Assembly: GCF_001194135.2 (NCBI RefSeq)
Contig: NC_068985.1
Span: 25,078,841 to 25,140,316 of the forward strand
Direction of reading: 5' to 3'
From: Octopus bimaculoides
Lineage: Eukaryota
Length of the DNA: 61,476 nucleotides
Under the pieces are notes generated by a model. The model searched no databases and was not told the DNA's origin. It saw nothing but the letters and a program-made list of their open reading frames with translations. Of the stretch, positions 37,501-60,906 are shown piece by piece (position 1 is the stretch's first letter; each line of letters starts with the position of its first letter). Position numbers and translations under genes: made by a program.

Positions 37501-40500
37501 GTAATAGAAATTTCCAAGTGGCCTATTCCCAGCTTTTCTAAATACATGAATAAATCTTTGAAGGATGTTCTACAGTTAAAGATAGCCCAAGGTTGAAAGA
37601 AATCAAATACAGTCTCTTGACTAAAGAAAACAAATCCTATACATCCTTATTATTTATTGATTGTTGCCTTGAAAGAATTGTTCTTTGTTCACCCACTACA
37701 CTCTCAGAGTGGTTGGCATTAGGAAGGGCATCCAGCTATAGAAAACCATGCCAAATTAGACTGGAGTCTGGTGCAGCCTTCCGACGTTCCAGCCCTGTCA
37801 AACTGTCCAACCCATGCCAGCATGGACAATGGACGTTAAATGATGATGATAATGATGATATAAGATCTATGTCAGCATGGAAGGCAGACATTAAACGATG
37901 AGGCTTCTTTCAGGTTCCGTCAACCAAATCCTCTCACAAGGCTTTGGTTGGCTCGAGGCTATAGTAGAAGACACTTGCCCAAAGTGCCATGCAGTGGGAC
38001 TGAACCCAGGACCATGTGGTTGGTAAGCAAGCTTCTTACCACACAGCCACTCATAAAATTCATACTGACTCCTTTACTGCATATCATACATAGTCATTTC
38101 CACAATTCCAGTAGAGTCAAAATTTAATAGATGTACTTTGAGGCTTCTCAATTTTAGTTCTAACTTTGAAAACTTTCTCTCTAAATGTTTAAGAAATTAA
38201 GATATGTGGACTAGTTCATTGGTCTACATGAGTAGTCAATTTTAAACTGGTCTGTTAGGAACTAGAGGACATAATAAATTTGATGAGGTGAGAACTAAGT
38301 CTTGATGTACATCAACTTGAATGTTACTTTCTTTCTTAAACTTATAACTATTGCTGCCTTATTGATGGCATCTCTGGATATAGTTTCCACGGACTTTATG
38401 AGCCATTTATCTACACACACATGATATGGTTATTACATAGATAGATAGATAAATAGATAGATAGATACATACATACATACATACATACATACATAGATAG
38501 ATAGATAGATAGACAAACAGACAGACAGATGGATGGGTGGGCAGGCAGATAGGCAGATAAATAAATAGATAGATAGATAGATAGATAGATAGATAGATAG
38601 ATAGATAGATAGATAGGTAGGTAGGTAGGTAGGTAGGTAGGTAGGCAGGCAGGCAGGCAGGGAGACAGACAGATAGATAGGTAAAAAAAGACAGACAGAC
38701 AGATAGATAGATAGATAGATAGATAGATAGATAGATAGATCATCATTATTTTAAGAATTACTTTACCTTGCTAACTTGGGTAAGATGAAGGTGTTTTGGG
38801 GGCAGGGTTTTCTATGGTGGCTGGAAGTCTTTCCTNNNNNNNNNNCCTGTTTATGAATGAGGTTATAATCTTCCAGTCAACTGAAAAACGAGTGCTCTGG
38901 AAATGCTTGCATGAACAACCAGAAACAAACAACACTGAAATGAGGCTTTTGCTTACAAAGATTATGAAACAAGTCGAGACATGTCAAGAGGCTTGGATAT
39001 TCTTTTGTAAGGGATTGCAAGCAATTGACAGTTAGCAAAACCATTGATTGTAAACCAGCAAAATGTGCATGCAGATGAGAGAGAAATATGTAATCACTCA
39101 AACACCCACATATACATATATATGTGTATGTGTGTGTGTGTGTGTGTGTGTGTGTGTAGGAGTGTATATATAGATGTATGCGTGTGTGTATATATATGTA
39201 TGTATATGTATATATAAAATAAAAATGCCCTCTTTTAAAGCCTAGCCAGGCTCATGGGCCCAATTTCCCAGTTTCAATGGCGTATGTGTTCTCGTTACTC
39301 ATTTTTGCCAGCTGAGTGGAATGGAGCAACATGAAATGAAGTGTTTTGCTCAAGAACACAACGCGTCGCCTGGTCCAGGAATCGAAACCACTATCTTATG
39401 ATAATGATGCTGACACCCTAACCACTAATCCATGTGCCTATATGTGTATATGTATATATACACACACAATCGACGTCGGCGGAATTTGAACTCAGAACAT
39501 AGTGACTGACAAAATACTGCTAAGCATTTTGCATGGCGTGCTAATGTTTCTGCCAACTCGTTGCCTTACAAGGAAAAGAAGATAATGAACAACCATCTAG
39601 TTATAGTGTGAAATTGATACCGTCATAGCTCAACATGAGCTTAAATTTGCATACCAATAAATAAATAAATGCTTAGCCAGGATTGTTGAAAAGACAGGGA
39701 TGTTTAACATTTAACTAAAGAATAGTGATTCGTTGTATAAAGATTACCTTAACACATTAATAATTCTCATAATTTTGTATTATTTTGTATTTCAGTTAAC
39801 TCACTTGTTTGGAAATTGGTTGAACACTACTAAGTTACAAAATATTTTAAATATAAAACTAAATGATATTCAATTGGTTGGAAATCTGTTGTGTGGGATT
39901 GGTAAAGCTGATCTGGAAAAACTCAGTCCTCAAATCATCATGTATGTCCTTATATTGGTGTTATTTTTTTCTTTCATTTTATTTATTTATTTTTTTTCAA
40001 TTTTTCTCTTTTTGTTATTGATTGCAAAATTCCTTGAAAGGTCTACCTAACTAGTATTCATCACTAGCAACAATCTCTGGCTTGAGAAATTTCAGCTGTA
40101 TTACATGTTCCTACTTTAATAATCAGAGCAGCCCAAGACCTGGACACTGAGTGCTGTCAATAGAAAGATTTTAGAAAGCGAATCTGATCTAACAAAAATC
40201 AGGAAAGCAAATACTCTGATATGGTCAGTAGTTCCTAAAGACAATACATTACAGCTATGTGATGATATCCCATTGAAGTAATATGACTATGTGACTTCTC
40301 ACAAATTTGTCTTAACTAATTTTTACTGTTTCCACATTACAATTTGGGAGTGTATAATACTGAACAACTTATATATTACTTGCCTAATTTTTAGTGTTTA
40401 TTGTTAAAGACAGTGGAGGCGCAATGGCCCATTGGTTAGGGCAGCGGACTCGCGGTCATAGGATCGCAGTTTCGATTCCCAGACCGGGCGTTGTGAGTGT

Positions 40501-60906: not shown

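Follow-up and report, generated by a model that had tools for sequence, protein, structure and literature searches.

Tandem three-exon modules in a predicted two-core octopus protein of the stereocilin family

Stereocilin and otoancorin link the cell surface to the extracellular matrix or gel in vertebrate ears. The family that they form with mesothelin is already known, as are its repeats and its disulfides: mesothelin is a right-handed solenoid of the ARM/HEAT type with one Cys pair (24–26 residues apart) per ~140 amino acids (aa), in which C442–C468 is disulfide-bonded in crystals and another disulfide, C302–C326, precedes it by 140 residues (PMC10035497). Our search of the literature found nothing on invertebrate members of this family. 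The gene considered here, LOC106874393 of Octopus bimaculoides, lies partly within a stretch of 61,476 nucleotides (the window; assembly GCF_001194135.2, contig NC_068985.1, positions 25,078,841 to 25,140,316 of the forward strand), an AT-rich eukaryotic DNA containing nine N gaps; coordinates given below are window positions. An earlier note on this DNA, made from the sequence letters and a list of open reading frames only, had described a three-exon module that is repeated four times beyond the point where vertebrate stereocilin ends. The exons of these modules (M1–M4, each made up of an A, a B and a C exon; Table 1) are real and already annotated in RefSeq, and by sequence comparison the array that they form would lie inside the protein, between two copies of the core with which the family members end.

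The earlier reading of the exons themselves stood in every detail. All eight peptide motifs that it named were found on the plus strand at the expected places, and each of the 12 exons is bounded by AG and GT, has exactly the size given there and follows the phase order 0>2, 2>1 and 1>0 in all four sets. Joined together they form a coding sequence of 1476 nt (492 aa) with no stops, in which M1–M4 comprise 127, 120, 126 and 119 aa. An exhaustive HMMER protein search with the peptide of the module region matched a 2,400-aa protein (P0011; E 1e-288), which is XP_014777598.1, "uncharacterized protein LOC106874393 isoform X2", and the joined 492 aa are its residues 870–1361, letter for letter. Exact spliced mapping of residues 419–1361 on the window yielded 21 AG/GT exons with these twelve among them; this mapping was used instead of ab initio gene finding, which overcalled low-complexity exons. 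The gene spans 113.9 kb, so that the window contains only part of it, and the first exon and everything past residue 1361 fall outside. Two of the N gaps interrupt introns of the array; phase is kept across each and the module alignment shows no missing residues, and either gap might conceivably hide an in-frame exon.

Some of the searches were blind to this gene. The word-indexed protein search with the spliced peptides gave no match, though the library contained the exact protein, and Pfam returned nothing for the excerpted peptides, although PF21058 matches the whole protein at those same residues; negatives of both methods on spliced eukaryotic peptides are thus unreliable. A phmmer search of the PDB with single peptides was also without a match.

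The assignment of the gene to the stereocilin family, which the earlier note had proposed, is well borne out by profile comparison. A C-terminus of human stereocilin (STRC) served only as a bait, and it retrieved real stereocilins of primates, turtle, alligator, bird and several fishes. The hidden Markov model (HMM) of the vertebrate STRC C-terminus scores 177.8 bits on the whole octopus protein, in two domains: residues 671–1000 (99.0 bits, profile positions 13–334) and residues 2012–2398 (82.5 bits, profile positions 26–403 of 405, the tail and the hydrophobic end included). The Pfam family PF21058 (Stereocilin) matches residues 866–1026 with 54.7 bits at a cut-off of 26.6, and PF06060 (Mesothelin) does not match the octopus protein. 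At E<=1e-3 there are 174 relatives, named stereocilins and otoancorin-likes among them, and the best named matches are a mixture of the two. Judged by these matches, LOC106874393 belongs to the stereocilin/otoancorin/mesothelin family.

In the HMM alignment module 1 corresponds to the last LCG..C unit of vertebrate stereocilin, as the earlier note had stated, and the two exons of module 0 (33275–33468 and 36078–36233) correspond to the penultimate unit. The Cys pair of module 1, which in the family unit has the form LC(G/S)L ... C-x3-E/Q, occupies columns that are invariant with vertebrate STRC. A profile combining octopus M0–M1 with vertebrate STRC matches mesothelin chains in the PDB (E about 2e-4), which were reached only with the vertebrate sequences included, and there the Cys columns fall on C442/C468. 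Since that mesothelin pair is disulfide-bonded, the suggestion of one internal disulfide per module is well founded by homology and may be regarded as supported.

The modules M1–M4 are, on the evidence of their alignments, homologous to each other. In Smith–Waterman comparisons against 500 shuffles z was 7.4 for M1–M2, 6.4 for M1–M4, 4.4 for M1–M3 and 3.1 for M3–M4, and marginal (about 2) for M2–M3 and M2–M4; for the fifth module (M5), which lies beyond the window, it was 11.5 with M3 and 8.0 with M1. A profile of the last unit was built independently from 141 other family proteins, and it gave 78.7, 18.2, 13.7, 10.4 and 10.5 bits for M1 to M5; in 300 shuffles the observed score was reached once for M4 and never for M1, M2, M3 or M5. 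Each of the five modules has exactly two Cys, 25–30 residues apart; in M1–M4 one is in the A exon and one in the B exon, and a Glu stands four residues past the second (C-x3-E) in all four. The intron between B and C lies 35–36 residues past the second Cys, and both intron phases are the same in every module. Both the mutual similarity of the modules and the placement of their Cys and acidic residues had been pointed out in the earlier note. It is hardly credible that M2–M4 are chance open frames or dead pseudo-exons. The marginal z of M2–M3 and M2–M4 and the silence of Pfam on the excerpted peptides would agree with this, but the nine exons after module 1 have canonical splice sites, the right phases, no stops, the Cys pairs and the invariant C-x3-E, they are included in both the RefSeq and the UniProt models, and the family profile places M2 and M3 above 300 of 300 shuffles and M4 above 299 of 300.

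No similarity was found between the cassettes at the nucleotide level, which makes their duplications old, and HMMs of the A, B and C exons detected no additional copies elsewhere within the window. A profile from the four modules alone spuriously matched ribosomal protein S12. With an iterated module profile, 5–12 tandem modules of ~110–120 aa were seen in most family members, seven in turtle stereocilin and nine in an otoancorin-like protein of the hemichordate Ptychodera, counts that are approximate for any one protein given that the iterated HMM drifts towards generic, overlapping matches. The module of ~110–120 aa thus appears, by these profile matches, to be a general building block of the family and not peculiar to the octopus tail.

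A finer, second level of periodicity is visible inside the module: repeats of about 10 residues resembling LTPEQIAAL occupy the end of the last unit and the tail (the C exons and the vertebrate tail exon; positions 373–431 of the alignment profile). This region matches PDB 9zem, "HeliScrew4", with E 2e-17, and residues 1476–1520 of a relative of the octopus protein, P0021, weakly match the Pfam ALTTAQ repeat PF20080.

The gene structure is shared with vertebrates. The alligator stereocilin and paddlefish stereocilin-like proteins were mapped exactly on the genomic DNA of their loci; the alligator model lacks the beginning of the gene and covers rows 5–9 of Table 1, with the same sizes as in paddlefish. 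Over eight consecutive exons the octopus phases are identical to those of the paddlefish/alligator STRC genes and the sizes agree within 0–24 nt, a match that, drawn from STRC genes, does not discriminate STRC from OTOA. This agreement implies that the three-exon cassette predates the protostome/deuterostome split. The equation of module 1 with the last stereocilin unit is thereby backed by the same three-exon structure in both vertebrates. After that unit the vertebrate genes have a 148-nt tail exon and an exon for the glycosylphosphatidylinositol (GPI) signal, in place of which the octopus has, from M2 onward, further full and divergent cassettes, much as the earlier note had claimed.

What did not hold is the claim that these copies extend the C-terminus, which arose because the window ends mid-gene. 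The octopus protein runs 1,039 aa past the window end, that is, past module 4, and in the RefSeq protein module 5 (residues 1362–1465, FLACNLE ... PCSSEKQ) comes next, then an acidic low-complexity stretch of about 80–100 aa, about 200 further residues and a second core with a true tail. BLASTP of residues 431–1010 against 1767–2338 produced one collinear alignment of ~600 residues (111 bits, E 7e-30), and the Cys-pair units of the two cores pair in order (z 7.0, 17.4, 10.6 and 14.1). For each of the 21 family members tried, the C-terminal block can be aligned with the octopus protein at both places. The vertebrate C-terminus can be followed along the whole of the second core, through the tail and the hydrophobic signal, and, as in other members, 78 aa remain after the last module. 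The C-terminal block is terminal among 139 family proteins, followed by a median of 31 residues, and just two of the 139, the octopus protein and one metagenomic protein, have two blocks. On these alignments the array is internal, between two copies of the family core, and not a C-terminal extension.

Non-terminal blocks of the stereocilin type were noticed in P0012 (858 aa, ENA, 38 cluster members), which has two tandem blocks and comes from apparently intron-free contigs of about 5.4 kb, and in P0014 (651 aa, JGI/IMG); both come from metagenome or short-contig assemblies.

We consider it probable that this organization arose by the fusion of two paralogues, the array being an internal spacer between two solenoid cores in a protein of the stereocilin family. 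The unit would be an ancient cassette of three exons (~146/143/92 nt) with phase 0 at both ends, and with such symmetry copies can be gained or lost without breaking the frame. The window exons from 19903 to 44054 would encode the first stereocilin-type core with module 1 as its last unit, and M2–M4 with module 5 would replace the vertebrate tail and GPI exons and lead through the acidic linker to the second core. Tandem duplication would have come first and the fusion of the two paralogues after it. The upstream gene, running from a signal peptide to the first core, would have lost its tail and GPI exons, and the downstream gene, with a signal peptide, the array, the second core and a GPI signal in the order seen in P0021, would have lost its signal-peptide exon. 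We infer that the junction is at or near exon A2, whose odd size of 122 nt makes it a plausible scar; over its first ~15 residues it can be aligned with the beginning of the family tail exon, and the remainder is an ordinary Cys-bearing A exon.

The relative P0021 (1,587 aa, from an intron-free contig of 4,958 nt in run SRR24189503 that we take as a transcript) consists of a signal peptide, six Cys-pair modules spaced 108–123 residues apart, a core and a hydrophobic end. Its core is 32% identical to octopus residues 1543–2398 over 881 aa, with every Cys conserved. The occurrence of a comparable array N-terminal to the core in this protein speaks against another history, in which the cassette was duplicated in place downstream of module 1, lengthening the C-terminus of a stereocilin orthologue, so that M2–M5 are all local copies of M1. 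Such a history would account for M1 being the hub of similarity (z 6.4, 4.1, 7.7 and 8.0 to M2, M3, M4 and M5 in the calculation that includes module 5), for the equal phases and near-identical exon sizes of the cassettes, and for the fact that the vertebrate genes end after one more A-like exon. The modules, however, are non-terminal, with 1,039 aa after them that include the second core and its true tail, and a separate second event would be needed for the duplication of the 600-aa core. As an explanation of the whole we therefore find it rather unlikely; for the array itself, in-place duplication of module 1 is possible because the modules of the octopus protein and P0021 cannot be paired one to one.

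The fusion reading has also to be set against an artefact of annotation or assembly, in which a single gene model wrongly joins two neighbouring tandem paralogues and M2–M4 belong to the second. The two complete cores, the scarcity of such a layout (2/139 family proteins), the architecture of P0021, which is roughly that of octopus residues 870–2400 alone, and the N gap 44589–44803 in the junction intron speak for such a merger. Yet the intron between C1 and A2 is just 1,385 nt long with the gap included; nothing in the window matches the start of P0021, and hence there is no similar signal-peptide exon; and reading through the C1 donor adds 11 residues that do not form a GPI signal. In addition, there is no clash of phases, one and the same cassette structure continues unbroken from M1 to M4, and RefSeq isoforms X1–X7 as well as an independent UniProt model all span both halves. 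A mistaken merger is accordingly improbable in our opinion.

Several points nevertheless weigh against the fusion of two paralogues into one long protein. The continuity of the mRNA from C1 to A2 rests on the RefSeq and UniProt (A0A0L8GVT4) pipelines, which used the same assembly, and the intron concerned is the one that holds an assembly gap. The octopus and P0021 modules being unpaired, the array may, as far as their sequences tell, have expanded independently in each lineage and not have been passed down as a whole. The hydrophobic leader at the N-terminus, a signal peptide by inspection, and the hydrophobic C-terminus of the GPI-signal type, which ends ...NLNVAVLIFSILLLILY, both outside the window, were identified by eye. 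The fold of M2–M4 was left unconfirmed by the AlphaFold2 model, a single-sequence prediction with a mean predicted local distance difference test score (pLDDT) of 37, and the function proposed below is drawn purely by analogy.

In that low-confidence model (predicted template modelling score 0.20) the 492 aa are all-helical, with 31 helices, and the unit of ~120 aa is probably all-helical. Of the 49 N-glycosylation sequons in the protein, 16 are within the 492 aa, and by analogy with stereocilin, otoancorin and mesothelin the protein is probably a long, heavily N-glycosylated surface solenoid by which cells are tethered to a matrix or gel outside them. That the number of modules would set the length of the solenoid, like a molecular ruler, is a reasonable but unsupported extension of this analogy. 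More tentatively, and with some doubt on our part, LOC106874393 can be pictured as a genuine single protein, a head-to-tail fusion of two solenoids of the stereocilin/otoancorin type, with an array of phase-symmetric cassettes that can expand and an acidic hinge connecting them: a GPI-anchored "double rod" of ~2,400 aa, of an architecture as rare as 2/139, its length set by module number, which might serve a mechanosensory organ of cephalopods as a long tether.

Should the single long protein be confirmed, nature would have provided a test of how the function of an extracellular tether depends on its solenoid length and on the number of its modules, and the protein would be a candidate component of the hair-cell attachments of the cephalopod statocyst or lateral line. 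The cassette and eight-exon structure common to octopus and vertebrates appears to be new, as does the doubled-core architecture with an internal array; nothing like either was found in the literature searched. With the family and its repeats known and the exons already in RefSeq, the value of these results is comparative and not fundamental. The conservation of the cassette between octopus and vertebrates implies that the family grew by duplicating a phase-0, three-exon, one-disulfide unit, and an "uncharacterized" octopus gene can now be assigned to a family with an important part in hearing.

Other features of the locus deserve mention. At 15938–17201 a large coding exon contains a tandem repeat of 96 nt (32 aa) interrupted by the gaps 16236–16710 and 17021–17030, and RefSeq isoforms X1–X7 differ solely at residues 228–363, which are this repeat region; this leaves doubt about the number of copies and perhaps about the isoforms as such. 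A candidate exon at 38877–39006 (130 nt, AG/GT, two Cys 27 residues apart) was rejected, since the RefSeq protein lacks it and its phases (0>1) do not fit those of its neighbours; it begins just after a 10-N gap (38836–38845) and may be a dead or an alternative exon. Several interspersed repeat families, 75–93% identical, 170–420 bp long and in both orientations, occupy the introns, with copies at 22497–22882 and 40412–40795, at 21491–21891 and 41113–41516 (inverted), at 18446–18645, at 5337–5516, and at 37690–37859 and 44849–45020. They are probably short interspersed elements or transposon copies, and one copy adjoins the gap between C1 and A2. Parts of the B3>C3 intron (53380–54170) and of many others are taken up by long (TATG/CATA)n and (CA)n microsatellites, which yield long spurious open frames such as HTYIHTYIH...

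Table 1. Exons of LOC106874393 and assembly gaps in the window, with the paddlefish stereocilin-like exons set against them (row, number in the octopus–vertebrate comparison; sizes in nt, phases in brackets)
Row	Feature	Start	End	Strand	Size (phase)	Paddlefish exon	Remarks
	Upstream exon	19903	20046	+			With the next three, earlier Cys-pair units of the putative first core; paralogous by alignment to second-core residues 1767–1950
	Upstream exon	22146	22328	+			
	Upstream exon	24784	24893	+			
	Upstream exon	26034	26157	+			
1	Exon	27823	28004	+	182 (0>2)	200 (0>2)	
2	Exon	29878	29971	+	94 (2>0)	91 (2>0)	
3	Exon	31349	31514	+	166 (0>1)	160 (0>1)	
4	Exon	33275	33468	+	194 (1>0)	170 (1>0)	Module 0 first exon; Cys pair 764/793
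5	Exon	36078	36233	+	156 (0>0)	156 (0>0)	Module 0 second exon; alligator also 156 (0>0)
6	Exon A1	39796	39941	+	146 (0>2)	143 (0>2)	NLLCG, with first Cys of module 1; homologue of vertebrate 143-nt exon
7	Exon B1	42017	42159	+	143 (2>1)	149 (2>1)	SCNISEQ, with second Cys of module 1; homologue of vertebrate 149-nt exon
8	Exon C1	43963	44054	+	92 (1>0)	98 (1>0)	Module 1 end; homologue of vertebrate 98-nt exon
	Assembly gap	44589	44803	.			Within C1>A2 intron (44055–45439), at junction of first core and extra modules
9	Exon A2	45440	45561	+	122 (0>2)	148 (0>1), tail exon	Shortest A exon; Cys-bearing (TILCE in the earlier note)
10	Exon B2	47011	47156	+	146 (2>1)	86 to stop, GPI-signal exon	TCTTKER; paddlefish exon set against B2 and on
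	Exon C2	48336	48427	+	92 (1>0)		
	Exon A3	49294	49442	+	149 (0>2)		FLACG
	Exon B3	52389	52531	+	143 (2>1)		SCTADEQ
	Assembly gap	52728	52891	.			Within B3>C3 intron (52532–54693)
	Exon C3	54694	54779	+	86 (1>0)		
	Exon A4	57326	57471	+	146 (0>2)		STLCH
	Exon B4	59990	60126	+	137 (2>1)		QCSPSEE
	Exon C4	60833	60906	+	74 (1>0)		GT donor; coding sequence goes on beyond window with module 5 onward

Among the known systems set beside the octopus protein, P0021 has the layout of its second half, an array followed by a core; P0021, however, has nothing like octopus residues 1–869, and its modules have no one-to-one counterparts among octopus M1–M5. The otoancorins and otoancorin-likes (Ptychodera flava XP_070581149.1 and a shark protein) belong to the named relatives with the best scores (E 1e-22) and consist nearly entirely of tandem modules with a terminal core, but they have a single core and only about 1,100–1,450 aa. 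The mesothelin/MPF precursor (PDB 7UED, 8CX3, 7U9J, 8FSL), whose second Cys pair aligns with that of octopus module 1, is much shorter and furin-cleaved, with about two modules in the mature form, and its similarity is seen only with profiles. Vertebrate stereocilin (e.g., Chelonia mydas XP_043380033.1, 1775 aa) has the same penultimate and last Cys-pair units, eight last pre-tail exons that match the octopus exons in phase and nearly in size, the tail motif and hydrophobic end found at the true octopus C-terminus, and tandem modules of ~110 aa. At a sequence identity of about 21–25%, the difference is one of architecture: stereocilin, with a single core, stops about 80 aa past its last unit, whereas the predicted octopus protein has two cores and, between them, M2–M5, the acidic linker and about 200 aa.

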